From IMG/VR virus record IMGVR_UViG_3300046003_007892, positions 124,001-188,000 of that record: DNA of 64,000 bases. The stretch is one strand, 5' to 3'. Of this stretch, positions 24,635 to 44,641 are shown piece after piece. Position 1 is the first letter of the stretch, and every line of letters begins with the position of its first letter. The notes below the pieces were generated by a model that was not told the DNA's origin, searched no databases, and saw only the letters and a program-made list of their open reading frames with translations. The position numbers were made by a program, and so were the translations under genes.

Positions 24635-24909
24635 AGAAAACCACCTACGAGTATGGGGTCCACGAGACCAATGCGGAGGCCTGTCAGTTCGTGGTCTGCT
24701 TCCCGGTACGCCGACATGCAGGGCGTCACTGGGGCGACCGCAAGCTGATCATGAAATGGCTGCGCAACAACGCCCCCAAGGGCAGCTACCTCACGCCGTC
24801 GCACAACTTCCGCAACGAAGCCGGGGAAGAAATCTGGATGGTTCGCGTTGAGACCTTCACGCTCGCCACCGCCCTCTACTTGGTCTTCGGTGAAGGTTTC
24901 GGCGGGTAG
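24631..24909 (+). CDS. Hypothetical protein (small-family-like)
   Basis: LIMKWLRNN...VRVETFTLATALYLVF. Confidence 0.6.
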   Translation: MKKTTYEYGVHETNAEACQFVVCFPVRRHAGRHWGDRKLIMKWLRNNAPKGSYLTPSHNFRNEAGEEIWMVRVETFTLATALYLVFGEGFGG

Positions 24910-26570
24910 ACGGAGTCCACGATCTTCTTCAGAACGCCGCCGTGGCGGTCGTAGGCGCACGCGCCGATAGCACTCGTTCGGTCCAGCTTCTGGACGGCCA
25001 TCTTCATCTGCGCTGGCGTGAATTCCTTCTGCGGCATGTAGCCGACCATCTGCATCCGGTTGTAGGGCTCAAGCTTGTCCAGGAAATTTAGGAAGATCGG
25101 CATCGGGATGCGGTTGGCCTCATAGGAGGCATAATACTTTCTCGCGAACATTTCGACGTCGTGATCGAGTGTCGCTTGCAGGATAAACGGCGGGACGTCG
25201 CCGGGACCACCAGTCCAGGATTCAAGAACGTGGGGGTCGCGGGCAATCAGGGTTTCCATGTTGGCTTGGCTCATCCGCAGGCCCTGGTAATATTTTCTGA
25301 ACTTCTCGTGGTTCTGGAGAATGAACTGCTGAACTCCAGCGGACAGCTTGCGGCCGACTGCGCGGCGAGGCGTCTCTGAGATGATCTCGATCACCTGCTT
25401 GTCTCCAAACGGAGCGATGCTCATGATGAGATTGTCAGTCTCCCCCATGGCGCACAACGGGTCAGCCATGATGCGGTCCTGCACGGACTTCGGAAGATCG
25501 CTCCACTGTATACCATTGTTGCCCAGACCGGACAGCACGATAGACGACGTGTAGAGGAATGAGATGATCTCATCGTCGGACAGTTTGCCTTGCCGCATCT
25601 GGTTGATGAAAATCTGCGGCTTGGCCGACCAGATTGCACGGTTGGACTTCGGCTCGTTGCCTTCGTAGCGGTTATTGACCGTCTGGAGGAGCTTGATGCC
25701 CTTCATGGACATGAAGACAGCCTGCGAGGGCTCGTTCTCGTGGATGATGCCCTGGCCCTCGTGCTTGGACCAGTCGTAGTCCAGGACGCCGTCGTAGCCC
25801 ATCTTGCGAAGAATCTTGTTCCAGTCCAGAGACGGGTTGAGGCTTTCTTCGTCGTCGGCCCAAGAATTCTGGGTCTCGTATTCGTCGAGGTCGCGATGAT
25901 ATTGCTCTACCGCCCCCGCGTGGGTCTCCAGTGCCTCTTCCCATTCGTCTTCGCTGTCGAAGTCCTCGTATTCTGGCTCGTCGGGCCATTCCGGGCGGGT
26001 CAGGTCGGGGTCCACGAGACGCATCTTCGTTTTTTCGAGTGCGGCCTTGTAGAGAACATTCCACAGGGCGCCGCCCTCGGTATCTACGGGGAGATCGTCA
26101 TCCGGGACTTCGTTGAACTCCGAAGATGCGTAGCGGACATCCGATACGCTCACCTTGGCGAGGTCGAGAACATTCAGCGACGGGCTGATCTCGAATACCT
26201 GGATGTATGGAGCCGTGGAAGCGAACTCGACGCCGCCTTTGCCCTTATGGAGCACGTAGTCGATAGGGTAGGCGTAGATGCCCAGCGGTGTCCGATAGCT
26301 GGACTGGGGGTTGATGCCCAGTTTGGCTCCACGGGTATTGTGGGTCTTACCGGATGCGCCCGAGACGCCGCCGTCGCGGAAGTTCTTGCCTTCGATCTTG
26401 CCGCCGTAACTGCCAGCCTTGCCCATATGGGTCAGGTTGCCGACGTCTTCCGTGTAGGAGACGAACACGTCCTTTCGGCCCTCGTAGGGACGAAGCTGAT
26501 CTTCAATCGAACGCTTGAAGTTCTGGTCGGGATTCCGTCGCTGTTCGAGGAGGATTTCGTGGAAACGCAT
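24876..26570 (-). CDS. Putative internal head protein with ART-like motifs and acidic insert
   Basis: MRFHEILLE N-terminus; PLGIYAYP, GYDGVLDY, GIIHENEPSQAVF; CTAAATA 4 nt upstream of ATG. Confidence 0.75.
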   Translation of the reverse strand: MRFHEILLEQRRNPDQNFKRSIEDQLRPYEGRKDVFVSYTEDVGNLTHMGKAGSYGGKIEGKNFRDGGVSGASGKTHNTRGAKLGINPQSSYRTPLGIYAYPIDYVLHKGKGGVEFASTAPYIQVFEISPSLNVLDLAKVSVSDVRYASSEFNEVPDDDLPVDTEGGALWNVLYKAALEKTKMRLVDPDLTRPEWPDEPEYEDFDSEDEWEEALETHAGAVEQYHRDLDEYETQNSWADDEESLNPSLDWNKILRKMGYDGVLDYDWSKHEGQGIIHENEPSQAVFMSMKGIKLLQTVNNRYEGNEPKSNRAIWSAKPQIFINQMRQGKLSDDEIISFLYTSSIVLSGLGNNGIQWSDLPKSVQDRIMADPLCAMGETDNLIMSIAPFGDKQVIEIISETPRRAVGRKLSAGVQQFILQNHEKFRKYYQGLRMSQANMETLIARDPHVLESWTGGPGDVPPFILQATLDHDVEMFARKYYASYEANRIPMPIFLNFLDKLEPYNRMQMVGYMPQKEFTPAQMKMAVQKLDRTSAIGACAYDRHGGVLKKIVDSVYPPKPSPKTK

Positions 26571-26574
26571 CCAC

Positions 26575-26581
26575 TATTTAG
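26575..26581 (-). promoter_or_regulatory. Late promoter, leaderless configuration
   Basis: CTAAATA-GTGG-ATG; the TAA is also the stop of 26578..26994. Confidence 0.7.
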
Positions 26582-26994
26582 ACCGGGTCGCTGACCTCGA
26601 ACGAGTCGAAAATAAAAACGAGACGGTGAACCTGGGGGTTGCCGTCCATGGTGTTCATATTCATGTCGGTGACCGCGTGCGTGTAGAGACGGCAGCCGAG
26701 AAAGTTTCTCGTCGCCCCCTTCTCTCTCTTGCCCTGCCGATTGATATTGTGGGGCGTCATTCGAACCGCGACTTTGCTGGCCTCGTCATTGGAACCTCGG
26801 GACGACGCCATGCGGCCGATCATCCTGACGATGCGTCCGTCGAGATCATCGGCGGCAGCTAGCCAAACCCGATGAGCGGTGAGATCAAATCCGATTTCGT
26901 GGACATGGTTGGCCCAGATGCTCGGCTCATCGGCCAGCATGAGCATCATTCCAGTCACATCCACCACGAACCTGTTGGACGCGGTTCTGGTCAT
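26578..26994 (-). CDS. Hypothetical protein, paralog of 26991..27464
   Basis: RFVVDV...HRLVFIFDSFEV aligns by eye with its neighbour. Confidence 0.7.
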   Translation of the reverse strand: MTRTASNRFVVDVTGMMLMLADEPSIWANHVHEIGFDLTAHRVWLAAADDLDGRIVRMIGRMASSRGSNDEASKVAVRMTPHNINRQGKREKGATRNFLGCRLYTHAVTDMNMNTMDGNPQVHRLVFIFDSFEVSDPV

Positions 26995-27464
26995 CGGCCG
27001 CCCTTGCGGAGCTTGATCGGTTTCGTCTTCGGCAAACGGACCTCGAACAGCCCGTAGGTGAACGTCAGACGATGCGAGATCATGACCCGCTCGGATTCAT
27101 AGTCGCGCCTCATCGGCGTGATGCGGTCGTGCCGTTTCAGCACGAGATCGCTGAACACCTTGGTGTGCCCCTCTGTGAATTCGTCCGGGTCACCCTTGAC
27201 CGAAATCGTGAGCCCGTCTGGACAGTGGAGGCGCGACATCATCATGGCCACCTGACCATGGCGGTCCTCCGAGACGGTGAACCTTACGGTTTTCTTCGCG
27301 ACGTTGAAGTGGATGTTCCACACGAACCGACCGATATCTTCGCAGTCGTTGAGGGCCAGGAAGACCGAGTTGACGGTGACCTCGAAGTCTTGGTTGAGGG
27401 CCGTGAAATCGTCATCCTCTCCAAGAAAATGTTCGTCCTCGGGGTCGTACTTGTAGACGCTCAC
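26991..27464 (-). CDS. Hypothetical protein, paralog of 26578..26994
   Basis: DFEVTV...HRLTFTYGLFEV. Confidence 0.7.
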   Translation of the reverse strand: MSVYKYDPEDEHFLGEDDDFTALNQDFEVTVNSVFLALNDCEDIGRFVWNIHFNVAKKTVRFTVSEDRHGQVAMMMSRLHCPDGLTISVKGDPDEFTEGHTKVFSDLVLKRHDRITPMRRDYESERVMISHRLTFTYGLFEVRLPKTKPIKLRKGGR

Positions 27465-28072
27465 GCGCCCTTCTCCCCATGGATGGCTTTCACGAGGGCC
27501 ATCTGCGTGGTGAGCAGATGCTTGATGTTCTCGTAGGCGGCCTCCTGGTCGGGGAAGAGGCGACGAGCCTTCTTGATCATCGGCAGGAAGAACTCCTCGC
27601 CCTCAGCCACGTAGGCGAGTTGTTTCTTGGCATTGAAAACGCCCACCATGGAGTTGAAGTTGTGGCCCCGGTCGGCGCCCTTGCCGATGCTCGCATAGGG
27701 GTCTTGAGCGATGCTGGCGAAAACCTCGGTAGGGTTGCGTTTGACGCCCTTGAACTCCTTGGTCATCGCCCAGACAGAGGTCGCGACATCCTCGCCGAAG
27801 CGGCGGGCCTGTTCGTCGCGCGCAATCCCATAGTCTTCGGAGACGTCGTGGAGGAGACAGACCGTCAGGGTCTTCTCCATGTCGCGCAGCGCGGGCAGGG
27901 TGCGGACGTAGTGGCAGATCGCGATCTGATGACTGAACTCCGGCGTGACGCCGTCCTTGCGGAAGCCATTGTGATGGAAAGCTGCGAACTCCATGGCCTC
28001 TAGGGCGAGGTTGTAGCCTCGACCCAGAAGCCAGTATCGGAGGGCGATTTCTTGTTTCTTGAGAGGGTCCAT
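27461..28072 (-). CDS. HD-domain RelA/SpoT-type hydrolase (Mesh1/small alarmone hydrolase-like)
   Basis: AAFHH.G.RKDGVTPEFSH, LLHDVSED, KGADRGHN. Confidence 0.88.
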   Translation of the reverse strand: MDPLKKQEIALRYWLLGRGYNLALEAMEFAAFHHNGFRKDGVTPEFSHQIAICHYVRTLPALRDMEKTLTVCLLHDVSEDYGIARDEQARRFGEDVATSVWAMTKEFKGVKRNPTEVFASIAQDPYASIGKGADRGHNFNSMVGVFNAKKQLAYVAEGEEFFLPMIKKARRLFPDQEAAYENIKHLLTTQMALVKAIHGEKGA

Positions 28073-28102
28073 GACTTCATGATGGCTCCTTACTCAGGAT
28101 TG

Positions 28103-28789
28103 TCAAGAAGAAGGAGCATCAATTCCCGCAAGTCTGGCAAGAATTTCGCAGTCGCCTACGTTGACCTCGACCAGACCCATTGCTTCGGTGCGGTCAGCGA
28201 AGCATTTGTTCGCAGCTTCGGCCACAGCGACACCCGCATCGCGCTTGCCGTTGTCATATCCCTTGCCTTGTCCGAAGTGATGACCGAGGCCGAACATGAC
28301 GGCGCAGACGAACGTCAGAAGGAGTATGCTGCTGACGATCTCAACCACGCTGTGCTCGCCGGGTTTCTTGACGACGGGCTTGGGCTTCGGGGCATTGGTG
28401 ACGAGGGCGGCAGCCGGTGACACAGCCTCATTGAGGATTTGGCGAGAGCCGGAAAGACCCAGTCGATCACCTAGAGGGCTGTAGCCGTCGCTGATCAACG
28501 GCGCGATCAGACGAAGCTTGTTCAGTTTATCGATTCGGCTGTTTTCCAGTTTGGTGACGTCGAGGAGACCGCGCTCGACCGCAAACGACGTGGCGCCGAG
28601 AACATCACCGATCTCGTCGTGGATGAGGTCCAGGTTGGTCCTCTTCGATTTGTCGTCGGGATTGTAGGAGTCGTAGCCGTGGCGGAGGGTCTTGCCGATG
28701 ATCTGCACGACTTCGCCGCACTCTTCTGACAGGACGCCGATCTCGTATTGATGAGCAAGTTTCTCGGGATGGGGATGACGATTGGACAA
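28103..28789 (-). CDS. MazG-like NTP pyrophosphohydrolase fused to a C-terminal TM region
   Basis: LSEECGEVVQIIGKTLRHG...DEIGDVL; then SILLLTFVCAVMFGLG. Confidence 0.8.
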   Translation of the reverse strand: MSNRHPHPEKLAHQYEIGVLSEECGEVVQIIGKTLRHGYDSYNPDDKSKRTNLDLIHDEIGDVLGATSFAVERGLLDVTKLENSRIDKLNKLRLIAPLISDGYSPLGDRLGLSGSRQILNEAVSPAAALVTNAPKPKPVVKKPGEHSVVEIVSSILLLTFVCAVMFGLGHHFGQGKGYDNGKRDAGVAVAEAANKCFADRTEAMGLVEVNVGDCEILARLAGIDAPSS

Positions 28790-28842
28790 AATATGACCTA
28801 GTGGGACGTGGTTATAGGTCTGTTGCTGTCCCTCAATACGAC

Positions 28843-28867
28843 AAAAGACCGGGGATTAACCCCGGCC
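28843..28867 (-). terminator. Intrinsic terminator
   Basis: GGCCGGGG-ttaat-CCCCGGTC-TTTT on minus strand. Confidence 0.8.
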
Positions 28868-28909
28868 TTATGGTAACCGATAGGGTTCGGCAGAGCCGAA
28901 TTAAATCGA

Positions 28910-29218
28910 TCAGACGGCGCGCAGCGTCGGCGTTGTTTTGCCGCGTTGAATGCCGAACGGTTCTCCCGCGACCTGAAGGGCCTGCTTGGCGGTTTGCAGC
29001 GCGGCGAGGGCCTCGCCGATTTTGTTGATCTGGATGGTCTCCAGTCCAGCCCGCGTCTTCGACAGCGCAGTCAGGCGCGTGATCGAATCGTTGACGACCA
29101 GCAGGTTGCTCGTCAGTTCCTGTTCCAGGAGAGCAGGCAGGGACTGCGAGATCGAATTGATCTGGTCGATCACCGAGAGATCGGTTGTCGGGGCGACAGA
29201 TGCGGGAATTGCGGACAT
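28910..29218 (-). CDS. Small coiled-coil-like protein downstream of the large ncRNA
   Basis: GAGGAGG SD; L/I/A/Q-rich heptads. Confidence 0.75.
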   Translation of the reverse strand: MSAIPASVAPTTDLSVIDQINSISQSLPALLEQELTSNLLVVNDSITRLTALSKTRAGLETIQINKIGEALAALQTAKQALQVAGEPFGIQRGKTTPTLRAV

Positions 29219-29284
29219 GGGTTCCTCCTCAGGAATTTCACAGGATGGTCACAGAATATCCGGTTTCCCAAATTTGGAAAGGTT

Positions 29285-29938
29285 TTTTTCGGACTACGAG
29301 ATGTCCGACTGTCGTCGTCCATCTGCTTCTGTTCGTCTCACTCGCAAGCTCGTTCGCTTGAACATCAGCAATTCAGACACTTAAACAAACAAGTCATCAT
29401 CCCTAGATCGCGAAGCATCACTTTTATCCCCCTATGATTCTGGAGGTCCCCATAGGGGCAGAATCATAGAAGGAAAAGTAATCAGACACCCTGAGTCGGC
29501 TCATGACCAGCCACATCAGCCGCGATGTCGTTTTACGGACGGCTGGCGGTTCCCCGCTACCAGCATGAGCGGCCCAATCCCGGCGAGCTTACTATGGTGA
29601 ACGAGACCTCAGCTTGTTCCTCTGGATATCGATCAGGTCGATTTAATCCCCAGGAGCCTATGTCTCAGCGTGCTATTTTTGTGCCGAACGGTTATGGAAT
29701 TGCTTCCAAGCTTACACGGAGGGCGATGGGCGGACCCCACGTGCACGGATAGACGTCAAGCGTTAGACGTAGCTATCCTCTTTGTTTAAGTGCCTTTTCG
29801 CGAATACGAACTCCGCCGAGGGGCTGACCGCTGGGAAGCAAATCACCTCACTGGTCGTCCTACCCTGTAGCCGGTCATTCTTCCCGACTTTCAGTGTTGA
29901 GGCGGGCATCACCTCTAGTAGCCCTGGACGCGCTATGT
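29285..29938 (-). ncRNA. Unidentified ~650-nt highly structured RNA
   Basis: Own promoter; no credible ORF; 12-bp long-range helix 29378-89/29781-92; 11-bp helix 29432-42/29459-69 extended by G-U only on the minus strand; GGAA and GCAA GNRA loops; G(CUUG)C loop with tandem GA pairs. Confidence 0.8.
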
Positions 29939-29945
29939 AGGGGTA

Positions 29946-29975
29946 ACTATAGAATCGAATCCTCGGAGTCGTCAA
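29946..29975 (-). promoter_or_regulatory. Sigma70-type promoter for the large ncRNA
   Basis: TTGACG-N18-TATAGT. Confidence 0.75.
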
Positions 29976-29993
29976 ATAGAATCAGAGGTTGTA

Positions 29994-30803
29994 TTAGCGG
30001 CACCCCATGGCGCGTCTATACTGTGCGAAGTTTGCTTGCACCCATTGGATTACTACGCTCATGTCGTCGTTCACGAACAGAGGCCGCAATCCCCTGTTCT
30101 GGTTTTTGTTTATCACCTTCCAGGTCCCGCCATCGTTGGCGATGAAGACGATATCGCGGGGGTCAACGTCTGCTCCCCAGAACACGATCTGTTCTTCCTG
30201 ATCGCCGTGGTGGTCACACTTGACGCCTGAGTTCATGAACATGACGGCCTCTCGCCCATACTTGCTGCCGCTGTCGGCATTGCGGTAGTTGGCGTCGTAG
30301 GCGAAATTGTAGCCGCCGTGCTTTTTTGCCTCGTCTGAGAACCACGTAGTCAGCCCGAGCTTGTCCATCTCGTCCATTCCGTACTTGAAACCATAGAGGG
30401 AGATTTCGCGGGCGTTGTCCGAAAAATGGATGAGCCACGTCGTGCGAGGAATCAGGCGATCTTTCCCGAGTGTCATGTGGGCGGTGGTCGGGGCATCGGC
30501 CGGGTCGTGGTGCAAGATCGTACCGATGATATCCTGGGCGCATTCTTTCTGGATGTGCTCGGGGAGCTTGTAGAAAAAATCGGCATCATACGTGATGGAG
30601 TTGGCGAGATCGTTCCAGGTGACCTCTTCGCCCGCCGCCTCATTGGTCTCGTCGGGATAGTTGTCCACGAGCCATGACGCGATATGACTCCAGTGCTGGT
30701 AGGGGTCGAAATCTCCACCCTTCATGTACTGGAGGAAATTCGTGTTGTCGGGAGAATACTTCTCCATCACGGACTCGGCGACGATTTCGAAGTAGGTTTT
30801 CAT
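29994..30803 (-). CDS. Putative internal head protein, ART-like C-domain
   Basis: MKTYFEIVAE resembles the T4 capsid-targeting sequence; WLIHFS...NFAY...DQEEQIVFW; ATAAATA 5 nt upstream. Confidence 0.75.
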   Translation of the reverse strand: MKTYFEIVAESVMEKYSPDNTNFLQYMKGGDFDPYQHWSHIASWLVDNYPDETNEAAGEEVTWNDLANSITYDADFFYKLPEHIQKECAQDIIGTILHHDPADAPTTAHMTLGKDRLIPRTTWLIHFSDNAREISLYGFKYGMDEMDKLGLTTWFSDEAKKHGGYNFAYDANYRNADSGSKYGREAVMFMNSGVKCDHHGDQEEQIVFWGADVDPRDIVFIANDGGTWKVINKNQNRGLRPLFVNDDMSVVIQWVQANFAQYRRAMGCR

Positions 30804-30808
30804 CCACC

Positions 30809-30815
30809 TATTTAT
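30809..30815 (-). promoter_or_regulatory. Late promoter, leaderless configuration
   Basis: ATAAATA-GGTGG-ATG. Confidence 0.7.
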
Positions 30816-30850
30816 TGACTGGCCGGGCCCGGTTGTCCTATCGCTCCCGT

Positions 30851-31261
30851 ATGAACATGTCATTTGAGAGCCACGGCTTCACCTACCTGATCGGGCACCC
30901 GATCACCAAAATCGAAATCGGCAACTCGGGTGCCTATCTGCGTCTGACTGCCTTCGGCGTCGAGTATGCATTCGGAGCCTTCGGTGACTGCTGCTCGCAT
31001 AGTTGGATTGAGCACATCGACGGCGTCGCCGCTTTGCATTCTGGAATCGTTGAGGTCGAAGAAGTCACCCAGACCGTAGACGAGAAAGACAACCGGGACG
31101 AACTCGTTCAGGTGTATTTCTACAAGCTCATTACTGCGCTCGGAAATGTCACCATCGAGATGCGGAATGCCAGCAACGGCTACTACGGTGGCTGGCTGGA
31201 GACTTGCCCGCACGGCACTCCAAAGGACGTCGTGTGGAAGACCATCACGGAGGATTTCTGA
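30851..31261 (+). CDS. Conserved phage hypothetical protein
   Basis: GDCCSHSW...EMRNASNGYYGGWL. Confidence 0.75.
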   Translation: MNMSFESHGFTYLIGHPITKIEIGNSGAYLRLTAFGVEYAFGAFGDCCSHSWIEHIDGVAALHSGIVEVEEVTQTVDEKDNRDELVQVYFYKLITALGNVTIEMRNASNGYYGGWLETCPHGTPKDVVWKTITEDF

Positions 31262-32160: not shown

Positions 32161-32161
32161 C

Positions 32162-34124: not shown

Positions 34125-34592
34125 ATGGTCACCAAGCCACCCAGGAAAAACAACCTCAACCTCGCGGCGCAACCGTCCGCTCAGGGCTATCGCTTCATCG
34201 ACAAAGACCCCGACATGGAAGTCGTCGTCGCCGCGATTGCCAACTCGGGCCTCACGGTCGAAGCCATCAGCGAAATGACTGAACGGCAAGGCAACAAGGT
34301 CTCCGCCGCCGCCATGGTGGGCTGGATGTACGGCAAAACCAAGCGTCCCCAGAACTACACCCTCACCGCCGTCATGCAGGCTCTGGGCTATAATCGGAAG
34401 TGGATGGAAGCCAACATGGCCCCGACCGTCTCCATCGCCGTCGCCACCGCCGCCGTGGACAACATGGTGTCGAAGTTCAAGCTCAAAGGCGGTCTGCCGC
34501 CTCGGGGCCAGAAGGGCAAGACGGCCAAGAAAGCCCTCAAGGGAAAGACGGCCAAGTCCGGTAAACCGAAAGCCTTGGAGGCGACATCGTGA
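34125..34592 (+). CDS. Cro/XRE-like HTH protein with Lys-rich tail
   Basis: GLTVEAISE...VSAAAMVGWMYGKTKRPQNYTLTAVMQALG; AAGGAG SD. Confidence 0.7.
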   Translation: MVTKPPRKNNLNLAAQPSAQGYRFIDKDPDMEVVVAAIANSGLTVEAISEMTERQGNKVSAAAMVGWMYGKTKRPQNYTLTAVMQALGYNRKWMEANMAPTVSIAVATAAVDNMVSKFKLKGGLPPRGQKGKTAKKALKGKTAKSGKPKALEATS

Positions 34593-35653
34593 TCGACCCC
34601 AAGCACCTCTCGGAGTTCATCACCTCCCCCGACGCCACCGATATCATGCAGGCTTTCTCCTCCATGGACCAGGGGCCCTTCAGAGCCTCGCTGGTGGCTC
34701 ACCTGATGACGATGTCGTCCATGGCCGCCATGACCGCGAACGCCGCTCCAGCACCCGTTCCCGCGCCCCCTGCACCGGTCCCCGACCGACCGTTCGTCTC
34801 CGAGACTGTGGAAGGACGGATTCTGGAGCGTAAGCTTCGGGGCGAGACCATTCGCAGCATCGAGAAGTCGGAGAACGTCTCCTTCCGTTTCGTTCGCACC
34901 GTTCTGGACAAAGCGTCCAAGCAAGGCGTGGACGTCGGTCGCCTCCCGGCCAAAGCCCCTGCGGCCAAAGCCCCTCCGGCCAAGCACACACTGAGCAAGG
35001 AAGATCGCGGCCTGCGTCGCAAGGAAGCCATCCGTCTTCGCTACCTCGGGATGGGTCCCAAGGAGATCGCCGTTCAACTCGACATGTCGATTGGCAACGT
35101 CGGGAATGCGATCTGGGCCGCGAAGACTGGCGACAAAGGAGAGCCCGTCACGGTCTTTCCCGATATCGACGAGACCATCCTGGCGGGAAGCATCCCCGGA
35201 CCATTCAATGTGAAGTCTTCGGGGAAACGGTTCGTCTGGGCTGATCATCCCGAGATCGAGCACGCCGTGATCGACCGCTTTCTTCAGGGCGAACGAGCCA
35301 GCACCCTGATGAAGTTCATCCGCGAGCAATCCGGCGACGACATCACCGAGAACATGGTTCTGGGCCGTCTCTACAACCGCCGCCCTGAGTTCCCCGTCGA
35401 AGTCCTCCGCGATGGTCCGATCTCGTGGATGGAGGCGTGGACGATCATGTCGGTGGTGAACAAGTCCCCCGAGGGCTGGCTGACCAAACTGTCTGATCGT
35501 CTCGGTCTTCGGGAGCGCATCACGCCGCCGCAGGATATCAACGCGATTGCGGCGCCGGAGAAGATCGCACTCATTCGGTCGGCCTACCACGCGACCATTC
35601 TCGCGCGGGGAAATACGGGAACGGTTGCCCAAACGGTCGCCCAAACGGCCTGA
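34589..35653 (+). CDS. Multi-HTH DNA-binding protein (LuxR/sigma4-like and GcrA-like HTHs)
   Basis: GMGPKEIAVQLDMSIGNV; W...LQGERASTL...ITENMVLGRLYNR. Confidence 0.6.
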   Translation: MIDPKHLSEFITSPDATDIMQAFSSMDQGPFRASLVAHLMTMSSMAAMTANAAPAPVPAPPAPVPDRPFVSETVEGRILERKLRGETIRSIEKSENVSFRFVRTVLDKASKQGVDVGRLPAKAPAAKAPPAKHTLSKEDRGLRRKEAIRLRYLGMGPKEIAVQLDMSIGNVGNAIWAAKTGDKGEPVTVFPDIDETILAGSIPGPFNVKSSGKRFVWADHPEIEHAVIDRFLQGERASTLMKFIREQSGDDITENMVLGRLYNRRPEFPVEVLRDGPISWMEAWTIMSVVNKSPEGWLTKLSDRLGLRERITPPQDINAIAAPEKIALIRSAYHATILARGNTGTVAQTVAQTA

Positions 35654-36480: not shown

Positions 36481-37183
36481 AATTGCCGTCTGCCTATCGG
36501 GCCAGCCCCGCACGTGGAAGACCTGTGCGGCCAACATTCGAGCTTTCTTCGACCCGGCCGGAGACGTGGATTATTTCATCTCGACCTGGACGCGGAACAC
36601 ATGGTGGAACGACGGTCAGGCGTACCTCGAAGATGCCGACACTGAAGGACTATCTGAGGCTTTCAACCCTGTTGCTCTACGGATTGAACCCCTGCCTAAG
36701 AAATTCGGATGGAACGGTCTATTCGATTCGTTCACTTCTAGTGTGCATGATAAGAAAAGTCATGAAATCGCGAACTCTTTCCTGTATGATGTTGTAGTAA
36801 AAGGCCGGTTGGATTGCGTATTTGATCCTCGCTTGACGTTCAAGCCCGGCGCAGTAGAGTCCATGACCGCCTATTCTGTAAATCATATGGAGAGAATGCC
36901 CCACGAATACTATGGGGCCAATTTCTCCGACATGTGGTTCCACTCTGGAACCATGGAGATGGACATCCTCGCCGACTGCATGCGGGATGCCGACATCATC
37001 GAGCACGAGGACTACGGCCCCGGAGTTCTTCTCTGGAACCACATGACCAAGTATCGCATCCATCCAAGCTATTCTCCCGCGATGGTGCACAACACCATCG
37101 TCCGCAAGGAGTTCGAGCATCTCGACGGCCTCGTGGATTACGAGGAGATCAGGGACCGCTTCAAGGGCTGGGTGGGACGATGA
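36467..37183 (+). CDS. Putative glycosyltransferase-like protein (paralog)
   Basis: RIAVCLSGQPR...DYFISTW...YDVVVKGRLD...SDMWF. Confidence 0.7.
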   Translation: MKRSRIAVCLSGQPRTWKTCAANIRAFFDPAGDVDYFISTWTRNTWWNDGQAYLEDADTEGLSEAFNPVALRIEPLPKKFGWNGLFDSFTSSVHDKKSHEIANSFLYDVVVKGRLDCVFDPRLTFKPGAVESMTAYSVNHMERMPHEYYGANFSDMWFHSGTMEMDILADCMRDADIIEHEDYGPGVLLWNHMTKYRIHPSYSPAMVHNTIVRKEFEHLDGLVDYEEIRDRFKGWVGR

Positions 37184-38766
37184 CCGAGACTGTAGTCATC
37201 CTCGCTGCGGGATACGGGAGCCGCATGGGACCCTACGCGGACAAAATCGCCAAGACCCTCTTGCCGGTCGGCCAGAAAGCTGTGGTGAGTCACATCATCG
37301 ACCGCTTCGACCCCCAGACCCATTTCGTGATCGCGGTCGGTCATCTCGGGACGCAGATCAAATCCTATATCGCGATGGCGCACCCTCGGCTCAACGTCAC
37401 CTTCGTGGACGTCGATATCACTGCGGCGCCCGACTCCACTTTCGGACCAAACGCGGCCGGTCCCGGCACCACCCTCTTGGCCTGTCGCCCCGACCTCGGT
37501 GAAGGCCCGTTCTTTCTCGTGACCGGAGACACCCTGTTCGAACTTCCCGCCGACCTGACGGGCAACTGGGTTGGCATTCAGCACGTCGATGATCAGACCG
37601 AATACTGCAATGTCGTCCTCGACGGCGACATGGTCATAGAGGTGGCGGACAAGGTCGAGAAACCAGGAAGCATGGCCTGGACTGGTCTTGCCCACATCGA
37701 AGATCACAGCTTCCTCGACAAGCTCGACTACGCGTCAAACACCGGCCTTCCGCCTAGCGTGGTCAGATGGTTGAACGTGCGGACCAACCAGGAGAACTCC
37801 CTCTCGCGGGGTATCCGCCACCTGACCGATATGGGCACCCTCAAAGGACGTTGCCATGAGTGGTCGGACACGGGCACCTATGCGAAATACCGAGCAGTCG
37901 CAGGGGCAGAGGGGACATTCGCCTTCGAGAAAGAGGGTGAGTTCCTCTATCGGGTCGGAGATAGAATCGTAAAATATTTTGAGAATCCCAAGATTGCCTA
38001 TGATCGCGTCTGCAAGGCGACCATGCGGGAGGACGTCTTCCCCAAGATCGTCGGCTCCAGTGGGTCCTTCTATGCATACGAGTTCGTCCCCGGCCGGACC
38101 CTATACGAAGGTCTGACGCCGGGGCGTTTCATTGAACTCACCCTCTTTCTTCACGACCGGGTCTGGGACCCCAACGGCGACCCCGTGCACCCAACGCTCG
38201 TTCATGATTTCTATGTCCGCAAGACTGAAGCTCGTCTCGCGGCCTTCATGGAACGGAACCCCGATTTCGAAGAGGCCGAGTGCGTTAACGGTTTCGAAGT
38301 CAGACCCATCGCGGAACTCCTTCTGACCATTCCCGCGCACGAGGGCGTGAAGTCTTTCATCCACGGTGATTTGCAGTTCGACAACATCATCGACGACGGA
38401 ACAAAGTTCACCCTGATTGACTGGCGGCAGGATTTCGCAGGCCGGGTCGAGTACGGCGATCTCTACTACGATTTCGCAAAACTCCTGGCTGGCATATGGG
38501 TGGATTTCAGAGCCGTGAAAACCATTCAGCCAACCGTGGACGGTGGTCGAACGACAACCCTGTCATGCTTGCCGTCGATTGGTAACACGCTCGCCTACGC
38601 GTCGATTCTACAGGCAGCGGCGGCGCGGTATGATCTGGATTTCGCTGTCGTGAAAAAAATCACCGGCCTCATCTACTTGAATATGGCGGGACTCCACAAC
38701 AATCCGCTAGACTTGTATTTCTACAGTCTAGCTCAAGTGGTCCTCTCCGGTTATGATCTCGCGTAA
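37180..38766 (+). CDS. Nucleotidyltransferase + APH/choline-kinase-like fusion
   Basis: ILAAGYGSRM...KTLLPVG; IHGDLQFDNII...LIDWR...GDLYYDFAKL. Confidence 0.88.
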   Translation: MTETVVILAAGYGSRMGPYADKIAKTLLPVGQKAVVSHIIDRFDPQTHFVIAVGHLGTQIKSYIAMAHPRLNVTFVDVDITAAPDSTFGPNAAGPGTTLLACRPDLGEGPFFLVTGDTLFELPADLTGNWVGIQHVDDQTEYCNVVLDGDMVIEVADKVEKPGSMAWTGLAHIEDHSFLDKLDYASNTGLPPSVVRWLNVRTNQENSLSRGIRHLTDMGTLKGRCHEWSDTGTYAKYRAVAGAEGTFAFEKEGEFLYRVGDRIVKYFENPKIAYDRVCKATMREDVFPKIVGSSGSFYAYEFVPGRTLYEGLTPGRFIELTLFLHDRVWDPNGDPVHPTLVHDFYVRKTEARLAAFMERNPDFEEAECVNGFEVRPIAELLLTIPAHEGVKSFIHGDLQFDNIIDDGTKFTLIDWRQDFAGRVEYGDLYYDFAKLLAGIWVDFRAVKTIQPTVDGGRTTTLSCLPSIGNTLAYASILQAAAARYDLDFAVVKKITGLIYLNMAGLHNNPLDLYFYSLAQVVLSGYDLA

Positions 38767-39226: not shown

Positions 39227-39230
39227 TGGC

Positions 39231-39740
39231 ATGCGATATGCCGAACTGAGCGAGAAGTGGGTTGGGGCCGTCAAGACCAAATGGTCCAACGATCACATCG
39301 ACCTCTACATGGACCCGTCGCGGGCTGAGTTCATGAAACTCATGAAGGAATGGGGCACCGCCGCCCGCGCACTCGTGTCCACGCAGGGCAACCTTCTTTT
39401 CTGGCATATGGACCAAGCCCTCCACAGCGAGGCCGCAATGTCGATTGAAGGTCACGCCTGGGTCCCCGCCCATCTTGTCCTGTATCCGCCCGGCAACGAA
39501 TGTTCGATCATCATCAACGAGTTCGAGAACTTCATGTGGGATGACGACTTCGATGACGCCAACGGCGGTGGCTATAAACCCCTGCTGACCCGCGTCGTCT
39601 CGACCCTTCAGGCCAACGAGCATCTCCAGCGCATCTACGGCACGGTCGAACTCTGGGGTCTCGCCGAAGACCGTGGTCTCGACAATCCCTACATCGCCAT
39701 CACGCCGGAATGGCTGGCTGCCAACGTGGTGAAGAAATGA
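39231..39740 (+). CDS. Putative internal head protein (domain shared with 41296..42525)
   Basis: MRYAELSE; LYMDPS...ARAL...FW...ALH. Confidence 0.7.
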   Translation: MRYAELSEKWVGAVKTKWSNDHIDLYMDPSRAEFMKLMKEWGTAARALVSTQGNLLFWHMDQALHSEAAMSIEGHAWVPAHLVLYPPGNECSIIINEFENFMWDDDFDDANGGGYKPLLTRVVSTLQANEHLQRIYGTVELWGLAEDRGLDNPYIAITPEWLAANVVKK

Positions 39741-40294
39741 AGTTCGACGACATCCTCCTCCATGAAGCGGTCGGCGACGACTACCTCTATCACGGCACCG
39801 ACTGCGACAACGCCGAGAGCATCCTGCACGCCAACGTCCTGCGCGGAGAGACCGATCACCATTCCACCACCCTGATGCCCATCAAGGGTTTGAACCGGGC
39901 CCACCCCCTGCCATTCCGGGCCAAGGAGGTCGAGCAGAACGGCCGAGTTTGGGGAGTGTCGCTGACCAGGAGCCTGAGGTTCGCCCGGCAGTGGACATCC
40001 GGCTGGGGTGCCGTCTTCGTCCTAGATCGGAAGAAGCTGGCAACCCGTCATCGGTTCGTCCCCATCGACTACGACAAGAATCGCCGCGAGGCCGAGGAGT
40101 TCCTTCTCGGGAGCATCGAGAGCCTTGATGACTTCCTGGTCCGCATCGAGATCAGCGGCGAAGCACACGAAACCCTTCTGGAAGCCAACGAGGATTTTCT
40201 CGACGGTCAGAAGCCCAACGAACTTCTCCTCGCGCACCCCAAGCTTGTCGTGGTCGGCAAGGCGTGGAACATCAATGGGATGGTGAATACCTAG
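39737..40294 (+). CDS. ART-like putative head protein
   Basis: MKFDDILLHE; YLYHGT, VSLTRS..FA, EAEEF. Confidence 0.65.
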   Translation: MKFDDILLHEAVGDDYLYHGTDCDNAESILHANVLRGETDHHSTTLMPIKGLNRAHPLPFRAKEVEQNGRVWGVSLTRSLRFARQWTSGWGAVFVLDRKKLATRHRFVPIDYDKNRREAEEFLLGSIESLDDFLVRIEISGEAHETLLEANEDFLDGQKPNELLLAHPKLVVVGKAWNINGMVNT

Positions 40295-40596
40295 TCGCGA
40301 GGCGGCACATAGAAGCCGTAGCGAATGCGCTCCCGGCGAATTTGCTCGTCGGCCATCGCCTGCTCGTCGTTGAGGTCTTTGTAGATGCCCCAGCGAAGAA
40401 CCCGCCACATTCCACTACCGAGTTTCTCGACCATCGCCTGAGCTTCCTCCTGCGAGCAGAAGCCAGCATAGACGGAGTTGGTCCCGGCACCAACGACGTA
40501 GATGCCGTTGCGGTCCTGCCACTCGGTCCAGGTCCCCTTCACGATCTTGTCGTTCGGGGTCATGCTCTGTTCGACGATGTCTATGATTTCGCGCAT
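40291..40596 (-). CDS. Hypothetical protein with head-cargo-like N-terminus
   Basis: MREIIDIVE. Confidence 0.65.
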   Translation of the reverse strand: MREIIDIVEQSMTPNDKIVKGTWTEWQDRNGIYVVGAGTNSVYAGFCSQEEAQAMVEKLGSGMWRVLRWGIYKDLNDEQAMADEQIRRERIRYGFYVPPRD

Positions 40597-40603
40597 ACCG
40601 CCT

Positions 40604-41299
40604 TTAAGCAGTGTAGGTAATATTTGTCAAGTTAATAGGTTTCTCATTGAGGAGATCGTATCTCTCGATCACGCTCTGAACAAACAGGGGAGAACCCTTG
40701 AGGACGCGAAGTTCGTATTCGTTCTCGCCGGTTTCCCAATCCATCCCGGCCATGATGGTGTGGTGCCAGTCAATGTGGGATGGGTCTACGACGGCGTGGA
40801 TGACCACGTTGACGCCTTCGGACTTGAGATCGCTCCAGACGGGTTCGAAATCCCAAGCATGGGGGTCGTAGGTCCAGTAGATGCCCAAGCTGGTCTGGCC
40901 GATGCGCTGGACGGTAGCCGCCCAGTTGGTCGGGACCTTCATGATGCGGTGGATGGAATACAGGCCGGAATGTTTCTCAATAGCGGTCAGGCGTGCGATG
41001 ACCTCGTCGTAGCGATTGTCGCACCACCACATCGCAAACGCACGGAACTCCGGCGTATCCTGGACGTCGATATCTTCCATGTCCGCGAATTGATCGGGGA
41101 ACGGATAGTTGAAATCACCCTCTCGCCAGTATTCAATCATGCGTGCGCCATTGTCGGAACCCTGGAACTTGCCCGGATAGGCCGCATGCGCTTGATCATC
41201 CCAGAAGAGACCCTGAACGAGGCTGTCCGTCATCTTGGCGCAGATGGCAGCCTTGTCCGTGGCGCCGACGCTTTCCGCGAGCGTGATCAAATGTCTCAT
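40604..41299 (-). CDS. ART-like putative head protein
   Basis: MRHLITLAE; IHRIM, SLGIYWT, ENEYEL. Confidence 0.65.
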   Translation of the reverse strand: MRHLITLAESVGATDKAAICAKMTDSLVQGLFWDDQAHAAYPGKFQGSDNGARMIEYWREGDFNYPFPDQFADMEDIDVQDTPEFRAFAMWWCDNRYDEVIARLTAIEKHSGLYSIHRIMKVPTNWAATVQRIGQTSLGIYWTYDPHAWDFEPVWSDLKSEGVNVVIHAVVDPSHIDWHHTIMAGMDWETGENEYELRVLKGSPLFVQSVIERYDLLNEKPINLTNITYTA

Positions 41300-42525
41300 C
41301 GGAACTCGTAGGGACGCAGTCCCGAGAAGAGTTTCTTGAAGGCCGGGTTGGCGAGCATCTGAGCGGCCGAGTGCTTCGGCACGTAGACGAACACGTCGCC
41401 GGTCGTGAAGAAGGCCATCTTGGAAGTTCCGCCGATTTCGCCCGCCGCATCGCCGAGGAGTTTGTCGAAGTCCGTGGCGGCCATGAAGGGAGCAACGGTG
41501 GTGATGTCGTCGGTCATCTGACGGTAAATCTGTTGGTGGATGGCTGAGTTGGCGTCCCAGATATAGACCGACGCCCCGAACGTGACGCCACGGACGAGGC
41601 CGTATTTGGCGTTAGCGATGAGGCTCCTGGTCGTGTTCGGTGTGGGGTCGATATGAACGATGACTTCGCGGTCCCGGACATCGAACTTCTCCATCCGTTC
41701 CGTCAGGGGGCGAGCCGATTTTCGCAACATCAAATCGCTGTCGGCGTCGAACTCAAATCCGAGACGTTCATACCAGCTTTCAAGATCGATCTGGCCGAGC
41801 GCATTCGTGTTGTCGTCCTCGGCGTTTCCGAACTCGACATCCGATCTAGGGAACAACTCCAGGTCCACGCTGAGTTGATCAGCCGTCCGCATAAGGTCGG
41901 TCATGATCTGGCGACCCTTCCCATCATGGCGTTCGCCAGCCGGAACATGGAGCCATCGAATTTCTACGGTGTCGTGGTTGAGCGCAATGAGCTTCAGGTT
42001 GCTGCGGTGATATTTTTCCGCCATCGCCTTGATGAGCGCAGCAGCGTTGCCGGTGTTCTCGATCAGGGAGCGTTTCATCTCCTCAGAGACGTCGATGATG
42101 CGCGGATTGAACATTCGCTGGAACGCCGGGTTGCCCATCAGGTCGCCCTCGGCACCAGCGGCGACATAGAAGAAACCGACCTCGGGGTCTTCGATGAAGG
42201 TGAAGAAGTTGGCCTTCTCGTATTCCCGACGCGCATCATCGACCACCGTTTGGAGATCAAAGCCCATCATGAACAGGCGGACCTCGTGGAACTGGTCTGT
42301 AACCTGACGCCAGATGTCGGCGTGGATAGCCTTGCTGGCATCCCAGAAGAAAATGTCGTTGTTGACCGCAAAGCCACGCACCATGCCGAACTGCGCATTG
42401 GCCAGCAGGGCTTCCAGCGTGTTCGCGGTTGGATTGCTGTGCACGACAACGTCGCGGCCACGAACATCAAACTGTTCGGCGCGCTCCGTGAGGTCGGACT
42501 CAGCGAGAGATATGAACTGACGCAT
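41296..42525 (-). CDS. Putative head polyprotein: repeat domain - GNAT - repeat domain
   Basis: MRQFISLAE; WLHVPAGERHDGKGRQIM...WYERLGF (GNAT); two copies of LTER..FDVR.R.V.VH..PT.NT...L.ANA..G.VRG. Confidence 0.78.
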   Translation of the reverse strand: MRQFISLAESDLTERAEQFDVRGRDVVVHSNPTANTLEALLANAQFGMVRGFAVNNDIFFWDASKAIHADIWRQVTDQFHEVRLFMMGFDLQTVVDDARREYEKANFFTFIEDPEVGFFYVAAGAEGDLMGNPAFQRMFNPRIIDVSEEMKRSLIENTGNAAALIKAMAEKYHRSNLKLIALNHDTVEIRWLHVPAGERHDGKGRQIMTDLMRTADQLSVDLELFPRSDVEFGNAEDDNTNALGQIDLESWYERLGFEFDADSDLMLRKSARPLTERMEKFDVRDREVIVHIDPTPNTTRSLIANAKYGLVRGVTFGASVYIWDANSAIHQQIYRQMTDDITTVAPFMAATDFDKLLGDAAGEIGGTSKMAFFTTGDVFVYVPKHSAAQMLANPAFKKLFSGLRPYEFR

Positions 42526-43064
42526 TACTCGTCTTCATGCCACGTCTGGGGATTGCCGTAGAAATGGCGAATCTGTTGTGCATCAGCGGGGTCCTGCATG
42601 TCAAACACTGCTTGACGGGACAGTCCCTCGACGTTCTTCAACCATCCATCCACGATGAAGCGATCATCTACCACGGCGAAGGCGTGACCGTCGCAATAGT
42701 CGGCCAGCGCGGATTCGTCGTTGTCCTCATAGTTGATTCCGCCTGCGCCATGCATCCAGAACCCCATTTTCTTGGCTCGCTCCGGTAGGGCGGCGACAAC
42801 GAAGCGGGCCCAACTATCACAGAACACGGCGGGGCCATGGTCTCCCATGACGTGTTGCCCGCCGCCCATGGCGTCGTATTCTTCATCGGAAAGATCATTG
42901 ATCTCGGGGGTGGACTCGTCGTGATCATCGAACTCGATGCTGTTTGGATAGTTGGACTCATCTCCGAAATAGTCTTCGAGTTCGGCCTTGACCTGGAGGG
43001 CCGTCTTAGGAGGCGTGGCGTCTCGGTGGCGAGCCATGGCTTCGAGGAGGTTGGCGTATCTCAA
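42525..43064 (-). CDS. Putative head protein
   Basis: TTG in TTGA overlap; RYANLLE; C...A...GHAF..VDD.FIVDGW could be a papain-like triad. Confidence 0.65.
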   Translation of the reverse strand: MRYANLLEAMARHRDATPPKTALQVKAELEDYFGDESNYPNSIEFDDHDESTPEINDLSDEEYDAMGGGQHVMGDHGPAVFCDSWARFVVAALPERAKKMGFWMHGAGGINYEDNDESALADYCDGHAFAVVDDRFIVDGWLKNVEGLSRQAVFDMQDPADAQQIRHFYGNPQTWHEDE

Positions 43065-43513
43065 CGGTTTTCTCCGATGCGGTCCCATAGGCCATCGAGT
43101 TTGCCACCGATGACCGTGCGGTAGAGGAACTGGTAGCCGTCGTCGCGGAGTTTATCGAAAGCCTGCACGTCTTCGTGCCGGTTATCGCAGATGAAATCTC
43201 CCCGGTCGGTGGTCACGCACAGGACGGCGTGACCCTCATTTTCTTCAGTCTTGCAGACAGTAAAGAGAAGCGCGGATGCGGGGAACCCCGCCTTGAGGAG
43301 CATGTCGAGTTTGTAGAGGGTGATGCCGTCACAATCCTCGATCTTGTCGCTAGCAACATCGCGCGGGAAATCCCAGCGTTCGATGACGCCCCAGGTCTCC
43401 TCGTCCGAGGTCCACACGACCTCATTGCCCAGACGATTGACGCGTCGGAGTTCAGCCCATGCCTTGGTGGTCAGGACGAGACGATTATTTCCATCAACGG
43501 TGTATTTCAGCAT
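43061..43513 (-). CDS. Transglutaminase-like cysteine peptidase (BTLCP/LapG-like)
   Basis: RVN...W...D...W...EDCDGITLYK...GHAVLCV.T..GD.ICDN. Confidence 0.85.
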   Translation of the reverse strand: MLKYTVDGNNRLVLTTKAWAELRRVNRLGNEVVWTSDEETWGVIERWDFPRDVASDKIEDCDGITLYKLDMLLKAGFPASALLFTVCKTEENEGHAVLCVTTDRGDFICDNRHEDVQAFDKLRDDGYQFLYRTVIGGKLDGLWDRIGENR

Positions 43514-43695
43514 TGTTCGAACTCCGGGTTGCGCTCGCAGAACTCTGTCGCCGCTGGGGGAGTTGTGACCCTGCCCTGCGTTTCCATGTGCTCAGCACAG
43601 GGCAGGCCGGGCTCTGGAGTGCAGTGATCGTATTTGGGTTGTTCAGTACAGCCCAAGACAAACAGCGTGGCGAGGATAGCAAAAGCAGCTTTCAT
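43507..43695 (-). CDS. Small lipoprotein
   Basis: MKAAFAILATLFVLGC lipobox; leaderless after CTAAATA. Confidence 0.75.
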   Translation of the reverse strand: MKAAFAILATLFVLGCTEQPKYDHCTPEPGLPCAEHMETQGRVTTPPAATEFCERNPEFEQC

Positions 43696-43700
43696 GCTGC

Positions 43701-43741
43701 TATTTAGACAAAGAAAATCCAGATAAGGTGGAGGATAAATA
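43701..43741. promoter_or_regulatory. Back-to-back late promoters
   Basis: TAAATA on minus strand at 43701-06 and on plus strand at 43736-41. Confidence 0.7.
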
Positions 43742-43769
43742 CCCAAAACACACCGTTTTGGAGAAACCA

Positions 43770-44267
43770 ATGTCTAAGAAACCCGCATGGCTCGAAGTAG
43801 CCGAACGTTACATCGGCACGAAAGAATATCCCGGCGCCGGAAACAACCCCGTCATCCTCCAGTGGGCCAGCAAGACCGCCCGCTTCCTCGGTATTTCCTA
43901 CAAACAGGACAGCGTGCCGTGGTGTGGCCTCTTCACTGCATTCTGCATCAACGAAGTAGGTCTGGTGCCGGTCAAGGTCGCGGTTCGCGCGTCCGAGTGG
44001 GCCAAGTTCGGCGTCGCCGTTCGGGAACCCGTTCTCGGAGCTATCGCGGTCTTCACCCGCGAGGGTGGTGGTCACGTCGGCTTCGTTGTCGGCCATGACG
44101 CCGACGCCCTGCACGTTCTCGGTGGCAACCAATCTGACGCCGTCAACGTCCAGCGTATCGCGAAGTCGCGCTGCTCTGCGATGCGCTACCCGGCCGGTCT
44201 CCCGACCCCGCGTCCGCTCGCACATTCGACCCTGGCTGATTCCCGTCTGAGCACCAACGAAGCCTAA
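43770..44267 (+). CDS. TIGR02594-family NlpC/P60-like peptidoglycan peptidase (endolysin candidate)
   Basis: WLEVA...GTKEYPG..NNP.I, PWCG.F, GGGHVGF, VLGGNQ. Confidence 0.9.
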   Translation: MSKKPAWLEVAERYIGTKEYPGAGNNPVILQWASKTARFLGISYKQDSVPWCGLFTAFCINEVGLVPVKVAVRASEWAKFGVAVREPVLGAIAVFTREGGGHVGFVVGHDADALHVLGGNQSDAVNVQRIAKSRCSAMRYPAGLPTPRPLAHSTLADSRLSTNEA

Positions 44268-44641
44268 TGCGCGATCTGATCAAGCTGGCCGAAGGCCTGC
44301 GGCTCCTGACCCTCTACCACGGCACCTGCGCGCACAACGCGAAGATGATCTGTAAGGATGGTTGGCAGCCGCATTCCGGGGCTCCCTACGGGGCCTCACA
44401 CGGCGGCCAGTCTGATTATCTCTACATGAGTACCGACGAGGAAGACGCTCTTTGGTTTGCCGAAGAGCAGGGCTGCACGACGGTCATTCAGGTCATCAAC
44501 GTCCCCATCGATTACTTGATAGTGGACCCCGAAGACGGTTGCTCTGAGACAGTCGAGGAAGAAATCTCGGGACCGTATCCGGGCAAGGTTGCTTTGACTC
44601 GCGCCCTTGGTCCCGAACACTTCATTCTTTCTCAGGTCTAA
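44267..44641 (+). CDS. ART-like putative head protein
   Basis: MRDLIKLAE; LYHGT, LYMSTD...A..FA. Confidence 0.65.
   Translation: MRDLIKLAEGLRLLTLYHGTCAHNAKMICKDGWQPHSGAPYGASHGGQSDYLYMSTDEEDALWFAEEQGCTTVIQVINVPIDYLIVDPEDGCSETVEEEISGPYPGKVALTRALGPEHFILSQV

Follow-up and report, generated by a model that had tools for sequence, protein, structure and literature searches.

Leader-tagged candidate head cargo of an uncultured T4-like giant phage includes two proteins with a predicted histidine-type ADP-ribosyltransferase fold

We analyzed a 64,000-nucleotide (nt) stretch of DNA, hereafter the window, that corresponds to bases 124001-188000 of the 240,363-bp IMG/VR record IMGVR_UViG_3300046003_007892, which has a GC content of 0.58. 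Our focus was on five open reading frames (ORFs) between positions 24876 and 44641 of the window, for which a reading of the sequence alone had proposed divergent ADP-ribosyltransferase (ART)-like cargo domains. Based on sequence comparisons and structural models, we consider it probable that these ORFs belong to a set of about 24 leader-tagged proteins carried in the phage head, and that two of them, 39737-40294 and 44267-44641, are histidine-type ART-fold enzymes. The proposal as a whole is partly supported: the label "ART-like" holds for these two ORFs, where AlphaFold2 models, Foldseek and profiles agree, while 24876-26570 has a weak profile link only and 29994-30803 and 40604-41299 have none. 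The five ORFs, with lengths in amino acids (aa) and positions in the window, are:

24876-26570 (−): 564-aa ORF, contains IYAYP and IIHENEPSQ, leader MRFHEILLEQ
29994-30803 (−): 269-aa ORF, contains IHFS and DQEEQ, leader MKTYFEIVAE
39737-40294 (+): 185-aa ORF, contains YHGT, SLT and EAEE, leader MKFDDILLHE
40604-41299 (−): 231-aa ORF, contains IHR, IYWT and ENEYE, leader MRHLITLAES
44267-44641 (+): 124-aa ORF, contains YHGT and MST, leader MRDLIKLAEG

All five ORFs and the motif strings quoted for them were found where the sequence-only reading had placed them. The ORF listed from 39710 starts at 39737, in agreement with that reading, and within the frame 29994-30863 (−) the actual start is the ATG at 30803. 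GC content by codon position is about 0.6/0.38/0.75 in all five, as is typical of coding sequence. None of the five matched Pfam at E ≤ 1, and the sole match in the Pfam and PHROG scans was a weak one, of the 231-aa ORF to phrog_35613, the function of which is unknown. When this genome was searched with the models Arr-ms, DUF3990, PTS_2-RNA, DarT and ADPrib_exo_Tox, none of the five was matched either, and single-sequence phmmer searches against the PDB returned nothing.

A loose H/R...S/T/Y...E pattern in a single sequence has little meaning alone. In the family alignments, the residues quoted by the earlier reading are among the invariant or near-invariant columns for all five ORFs, with a partial exception in the 124-aa ORF, where the quoted MST is variable across the family and the Y directly preceding it is invariant. 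Judged from these alignments the motif pattern is real and non-random, which is a separate matter from whether it marks an ART active site.

Two small proteins with a predicted ART fold

Structure predictions were made for the 185-aa and 124-aa proteins. A word-index search with the 185-aa protein found two relatives and an exhaustive HMMER search 246 (E ≤ 1e-3). In a 67-sequence alignment, H19, G73, R78 and E120 are invariant and L17, Y18, I29, T39, S75, T77, A83, E118, E121 and F122 near-invariant, giving the signature LYHGT ... GVSLTR ... R-E-A-E-E-F. The AlphaFold2 model is confident (predicted local distance difference test (pLDDT) 92.4; predicted template modeling score (pTM) 0.86). When it was compared to the PDB with Foldseek, the check that the sequence-only reading had suggested, the matches listed were almost exclusively ART-superfamily enzymes; the nearest models in BFVD are uncharacterized jumbo-phage proteins (SP-15, Dickeya JA11, Atu_ph07 and phage G). 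On the model, H19 lies in the strand formed by residues 16-22, S75 and T77 in strand 70-77, and E120 and E121 in strand 120-124, with E118 just before it. The modeled protein has the split beta-sheet, with a triad on strands 1, 2 and 5, that defines membership in the ART fold, and from these strand positions we infer that the conserved residues would contact NAD+.

The 185-aa protein was the only flagged ORF with a tblastn match among GenBank phages, a weak one to a hypothetical protein of Bacillus phage SP-15. Two of its relatives, P0125 (2290 aa) and P0129 (735 aa), match its domain by HMMER in 9 and 6 separate stretches, respectively, which suggests that they are tandem arrays or polyvalent proteins of this ART-type domain. 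P0125 also showed a sub-threshold similarity to PTS_2-RNA (E 1.3e-4).

For the 124-aa protein we found 117 homologues, some with the leader and some without; the Joint Genome Institute (JGI) calls two of them "RNA:NAD 2'-phosphotransferase". Among 59 family sequences, H18-G-T20, G32, P35, L52-Y53, A61, A65, D87-P-E-D-G91, E99 and P105 are invariant, and the signature reads LYHGT ... YLY-x-[ST]T ... VDPEDG ... E. The family profile matched Tpt1 in the PDB (E 1.1e-3), followed by diphtheria toxin and tankyrase. Similar to the 185-aa protein, its AlphaFold2 model (pLDDT 85.8) gave Foldseek matches in the PDB that, among those listed, were almost exclusively ART-superfamily enzymes. By hhalign, the family is related to that of the 185-aa protein (92%, E 7e-7), and also to ART-PolyVal, for which we used an alignment of sequences from this phage and its relatives (87% probability, E 3.8e-6). 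The model shows the ART fold and an H-Y-E/D triad, and the 124-aa protein would be a minimal ART-fold protein. Its gene stands among virion genes, between a CHAP-domain gene, whose stop codon overlaps its ATG, and a gp15-like gene:

43728-44267 (+): CHAP-domain protein, like the C-terminal part of baseplate-hub/tail-lysozyme proteins (phrog_1259, E 3e-31)
44649-45983: T4 gp15-like tail sheath stabilizer

ESM Atlas pointed towards DarT/PARP, which we also count in favor of the ART fold. Judged from the models and profiles, both proteins appear closest to Tpt1/KptA, DarT, Arr and ART-PolyVal, that is, to the histidine-type branch of the superfamily. Their nearest structural neighbors act on nucleic acids, small molecules and proteins.

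Further ARTs are encoded elsewhere in the record. In its own coordinates (the record is G000 in our set, and G001, G003, G005, G006, G007 and G011 are related giant-phage records), two leader-bearing ORFs exceed the ART-PolyVal (PF18760) gathering cut-off of 31.2 bits, 18922-19698 (+) with 61.1 bits and 85371-86195 (−) with 58.8 bits. A third leader-bearing ORF, at about 86741-87898 (+), has a weak ART-PolyVal match (18.5 bits), with LYRG replacing YHGT. The PF18760 search of this genome gave matches only outside the window and to none of the five flagged ORFs. The related phages have 3 to 12 ART-PolyVal matches each.

A T4-type leader and a late promoter-like motif

Each of the five ORFs opens with a leader of about 10 residues, M-[RK]-x-x-h-x-h-h-E (h, hydrophobic). 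The same leader heads about 24 coding ORFs in the record: the five flagged ones, two more in the window and about 17 elsewhere. When only first-ATG ORFs are counted, there are 14 leader matches compared to 1.0 ± 1.1 (maximum 5) after residue shuffling. The dominant flavor in the record is MR-x-L-I-x-L-A-E, and the leader of the 269-aa ORF equals the T4 capsid targeting sequence (CTS), MKTYQEFIAE (PMC8442874), at 7 of 10 positions. For incorporation into the T4 head these 10 residues are enough, with gp21 cleaving behind the Glu (PMC9026906), and the tag is the only feature that the internal proteins share (PMC9026906; PMC3012670). Beyond the leader, the ORFs that carry it are likewise unrelated to one another. 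The flavor of the leader is specific to each phage, which places it on its own cargo: MR-x-Y-x-x-I-x-E in G001, MKYLKTFE in G003 and MKYLY-x-G-x-IYE in G005. In both AlphaFold2 models the leader is an N-terminal tail of low pLDDT. By sequence, then, these proteins display what characterizes a T4-type CTS, a leader of about 10 residues with an h-x-E end on otherwise unrelated proteins.

Upstream of the leader, 11 of the roughly 24 ORFs have TAAATA 4-7 nt before the ATG, and across the genome an upstream TAAATA occurs in association with the leader (odds ratio 17, p 1e-5). The hexamer resembles the T4 late promoter core. At this distance it would leave almost no 5' untranslated region, and these late transcripts may have little or no leader. 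Two of the flagged ORFs have it directly upstream:

26575-26580 (−): TAAATA, 4 nt upstream of the ATG of the 564-aa ORF
30809-30814 (−): TAAATA, within ATAAATA, 5 nt upstream of the ATG of the 269-aa ORF

The starts of the 185-, 231- and 124-aa ORFs overlap the stop codon of the upstream gene. The 231-aa gene is flanked, in a tightly packed run of three leader genes, by two ORFs, the longer of which had gone unflagged in the sequence-only reading and has no Pfam or PHROG match:

41296-42525 (−): 409-aa leader ORF (MRQFISLAES), first of the run
40291-40596 (−): 101-aa leader ORF (MREIIDIVEQ), last of the run

The shared T4-type leader, its enrichment and its link to TAAATA make the "cargo" half of the original proposal well supported by sequence. 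We envisage the following course, in which packaging, cleavage, ejection, NAD+ use and targets are all inferred. The leader-bearing genes would be transcribed late, and the leader would carry each protein into the prohead core, where a gp21-type prohead protease would cleave after the leader Glu. The mature protein would remain in the head and be ejected into the host with the DNA. Once there, the 185- and 124-aa proteins would most likely ADP-ribosylate a host macromolecule with NAD+ early in infection.

Three further conserved domains and the rival explanations

The other three flagged ORFs each contain a conserved region:

25656-26486 (−): N-domain of the 564-aa ORF, approximately residues 29-305, with an acidic insert
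29997-30506 (−): conserved core of the 269-aa ORF, residues 100-269
40607-41035 (−): core of the 231-aa ORF, residues 89-231

The N-domain of the 564-aa protein carries the motifs VSYT, P-x-GIY-x-YP, WN-x-x-LR-x-x-GYDG and IIH-x-x-E-x-x-Q, and across five sequences P-x-GIY, W222, R227, G230, D236 and I-H-x-x-E-x-x-Q are invariant. L092 (611 aa) and L093 (445 aa) are full-length relatives; the domain is also found in G001, in an ORF of 406 aa, and in G006, where it lies at the N-terminus of an ORF of 2452 aa. By eye, the part from GYDG to E is similar to the C-terminal region of ART-PolyVal, and hhalign against the ART-PolyVal alignment gave a weak match confined to that part (35-37%, E 3.5e-4). 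The five-sequence profile returned only chance-level rows from the PDB. We regard the 564-aa protein as a possible, unproven ART. On the same strand upstream of its gene, with two small unannotated ORFs in between, adjoining genes for an HD-domain phosphohydrolase and a MazG-like NTP pyrophosphohydrolase occupy 27461-28789 (−).

The 269-aa protein has 35 IMG/VR relatives. Its core reads WLIHF[ST]D-x-A ... GGYNFA[YF] ... KYG ... H-x-GD-x-E-x-QVIF, and the alignment of 25 sequences contains 13 invariant and 12 near-invariant columns; W24, H27, G65/N67/F68, D102 and Q106 are among the former, Y66 and E104 among the latter. Neither Pfam, PHROG and PDB searches nor hhalign with ART families gave a link for this family. 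In ESM Atlas the signal was faint, with an Arr-ms cluster at rank 26 (feature score 0.87) and a match to DRAT at a template modeling (TM) score of 0.34, the latter on a poor Atlas ESMFold model (pLDDT 0.59).

For the 231-aa protein, a hidden Markov model (HMM) built from five relatives found seven further copies in other giant phages. In the resulting 12 sequences, R30, G51, W54 and E108 are the sole invariant columns and E106 is near-invariant, in the pattern YR ... G-x-Y-W-[ST] ... E-x-E-[IV]-x-[LI]. This looks like the R-S-E signature of C3/VIP2/Alt-type ARTs, for which we found no HMM or structural backing: the family had no HMM link to PF03496, Pfam or the PDB, whose rows were at chance level. 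A search of related phages for Alt/VIP2-type sequences to use in profile comparison yielded one domain, in G011, and no further relatives. The motif is suggestive of an ART. When the families of the 564-, 269- and 231-aa proteins were aligned by hhalign to those of the 185- and 124-aa proteins, they shared the leader only, or nothing.

The same three types of domain recur in multi-domain ORFs of 1263 to 3886 aa in related phages. The 231-aa type is found in giant ORFs of G006, G007 and G011. In G006, the 2452-aa ORF starts with the 564-aa type and continues with the 231-aa type, and in G011 a 3662-aa ORF combines domains like those of the 269- and 231-aa proteins with a Pfam ADPrib_exo_Tox ART in one frame, as checked arithmetically from the locus coordinates. 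These giant ORFs have the appearance of the polyvalent effectors, delivered by the virion, that Iyer et al. 2017 described, a context that supports the three as injected effector domains but not as ARTs specifically. Their sequences are consistent with conserved effector domains that have ART-like invariant triads.

Several observations weigh against our explanation. Fold evidence covers two of the five ORFs, the 564-, 269- and 231-aa proteins being outside it, and the five are without a match to any of the Pfam ART models. The first-strand His of distant relatives (IHTT, VHYS) is Ser in the 564-aa protein (VSYT). A direct upstream TAAATA is present in only two of the five (the 564- and 269-aa ORFs), and the 240-kb fragment, which is 45% complete by CheckV, yielded neither a gp21-type protease (Peptidase_S77) nor a clear gp23. 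In favor of our explanation, Peptidase_S77 gp21-type proteases are present in the relatives G001 (89.8 bits) and G005 (53 bits), both 100% complete by CheckV.

How many of the five are ARTs is the point on which the alternatives differ most. It could be that all are, with the 185- and 124-aa proteins of the histidine type, the 231-aa protein of the R-S-E type, the 269- and 564-aa proteins divergent histidine-type enzymes, and each with a separate target. The invariant residues fit an ART-like triad in every family, the 564-aa N-domain is weakly linked to ART-PolyVal by hhalign, the 269-aa protein has its faint Arr-ms and DRAT hints, the G011 3662-aa ORF fuses the same domains with a Pfam ART, and ARTs are the commonest modifying domains in polyvalent proteins (PMC9503650). 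We nevertheless find this unlikely: profiles of 25, 12 and 5 sequences for the 269-, 231- and 564-aa proteins found no ART in the PDB, Pfam or PHROGs, and these families gave no hhalign signal to the two ART families. The 564-aa protein has Ser at the NAD-binding His position, and the TM score for the poorly modeled 269-aa protein is below the level of a shared fold. Conversely, only two may be ARTs, the other three having unrelated effector folds (hydrolases, nucleic-acid binders or defense inhibitors) with motif patterns that are coincidental. T4 internal proteins that share the CTS are functionally diverse, as the restriction-enzyme inhibitor IPI* illustrates (PMC3012670); mature parts of the leader ORFs here do not resemble one another, other leader ORFs give non-ART hints (a DUF6782 metallopeptidase, DUF6098), and the 269- and 231-aa proteins have no profile link to ARTs. 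Yet the few invariant columns are exactly those that an ART triad needs, and the 564-aa protein has its weak ART-PolyVal link, which leaves this explanation plausible, if somewhat improbable.

Two other explanations concern what the proteins do and where. The 185- and 124-aa proteins might not modify the host at all and might instead be Tpt1-like RNA 2'-phosphotransferases that serve the phage's tRNA and synthetase machinery, or non-catalytic binders of NAD+ or ADP-ribose that blunt NAD-based defense. Their best structural and profile matches are indeed Tpt1/KptA, two homologues carry the JGI phosphotransferase name, and the phage has tRNAs and two aminoacyl-tRNA synthetases. However, the matches are confined to the NAD-binding lobe of Tpt1 (approximately chain residues 84-180), 124 aa are too short to include the RNA-binding lobe, the PTS_2-RNA HMM has no match in the genome, a capsid-targeting leader suits an injected effector rather than a housekeeping repair enzyme, and the acidic residues typical of transferases are invariant, so this explanation seems very unlikely. 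We are equally skeptical that the leader is a conserved 5' gene module for recombination or translation initiation, with the proteins remaining cytoplasmic in the producing cell. Conserved 5' coding sequence with TAAATA 4-7 nt from the ATG could aid near-leaderless translation, and the fragment yielded no prohead protease. Against this, it is the peptide that is conserved, including the hydrophobic-x-Glu end that gp21-type proteases cut (PMC9026906), the leader flavor co-varies with the phage, and the same domains are otherwise delivered in virion-associated polyvalent proteins (PMC5512222, as cited in PMC9503650).

Known systems, significance and genomic setting

If the five ORFs are head cargo that includes two ARTs, the closest precedent is T4 Alt, an ART carried in the head, whose N-terminal propeptide is removed by the prohead protease and which is ejected with the DNA and acts at the start of infection (PMC9026906; PMC9503650). 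Here too a T4-type phage has ARTs that we propose as leader-tagged head cargo, known so far from sequence and models. Unlike Alt, which is large and belongs to the Alt/VIP2 family, the two proteins are small (185 and 124 aa), of the predicted histidine type and several per genome, and ADPrib_exo_Tox, the Pfam model for Alt/VIP2, has no match in this genome. T4's IPI, IPII and IPIII, which are internal proteins, share with our set a 10-residue, Glu-ending leader on otherwise unrelated small proteins and a diverse cargo; T4 has a handful of them, whereas this 240-kb fragment has about 24, including predicted enzymes.

ART-PolyVal (PF18760) and the polyvalent proteins likewise comprise phage ARTs predicted to be delivered by the virion. 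The 124-aa family is related to ART-PolyVal by hhalign, and the same genome has two bona fide leader-bearing ART-PolyVal proteins. The domains studied here differ in that they stand alone with a CTS-type leader rather than being fused in one polypeptide, and none of the five reaches PF18760. Tpt1/KptA (PF01885) has two lobes, and the 185- and 124-aa proteins differ from it in having no RNA-binding lobe: matches to solved Tpt1 cover the C-terminal NAD lobe only, and PF01885 (PTS_2-RNA) had no match in the genome at E ≤ 10. DarT (PF14487) had no HMM match either, and no DarG-like macrodomain antitoxin was seen among the neighbors scanned. Compared to both Tpt1 and DarT, the 185-aa family adds the motifs S-x-T-R and E-x-E-E. 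By HMM, the five ORFs are outside the Alt/VIP2, ART-PolyVal, Tpt1 and DarT families.

Head-packaged phage ARTs are an established theme, proposed from gene context and from MuF and polyvalent fusions (PMC9503650). The present case differs in that the predicted histidine-type ARTs are small and stand alone, in how many of them there are, and in the use of a short CTS-type tag that appears interchangeable with polyvalent fusion. It is conceivable, although we hold this only tentatively and think it rather doubtful, that a clade of T4-like giant phages packs the head with a whole array of different small enzymes that use NAD+, each with a short phage-specific leader, this fragment encoding at least eight; the types represented by the 269-, 231- and 564-aa proteins would then be three undescribed ART families, and the CTS tag and polyvalent fusion interchangeable ways of delivering one repertoire.

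Injected phage proteins precede phage gene expression and therefore decide the first minutes of infection and its outcome against host defenses. From this locus it would seem that the Alt strategy is multiplied in giant T4-like phages, with many small, fast-evolving ART-type enzymes beyond the reach of Pfam, each directed to the head by a tag of 10 residues. The two putative new ART families (124 and 185 aa) should be easy to express, and their structural neighbors include nucleic-acid-modifying enzymes. The three conserved effector domains offer clear mutational targets. With the rule of leader plus late promoter, sequence could be all that is needed to read out which proteins uncultured phages inject.

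As for the genome itself, topoisomerase II subunits of the T4 type are encoded in the window, together with ClpX, a TerC-like membrane protein and two aminoacyl-tRNA synthetases, one seryl and one class I lysyl. A megablast of the record against GenBank phages found no similar genome. Given this T4-type gene content and the lack of a GenBank phage match, the record reads as a fragment of an uncultured T4-like giant myovirus.

Some other genes in the window are worth recording. ARAGORN found a tRNA with anticodon CTA at 15655-15730 (+), which it labels tRNA-Pyl and which would read amber; the window ORFs read normally with table 11, so we did not assume recoding. It also found a 91-nt tRNA-Cys(GCA) at 17056-17146 (+), the length of which could accommodate an insert. 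The genes for seryl-tRNA synthetase, 49799-51151 (+), and class I lysyl-tRNA synthetase, 51752-53548 (+), adjoin each other (Pfam E 2e-33 and 1e-94). The ClpX homologue, zinc finger included, is at 2199-3479 (−) and the DUF475/TerC-family membrane protein at 57286-58989 (+). A 610-aa protein, 36934-38766 (+), combines nucleotidyltransferase (NTP_transf_3) and APH-type kinase domains, and a 354-aa protein, 34589-35653 (+), has a weak match to sigma-70 region 4 (E 1e-4) and is possibly a transcription factor.

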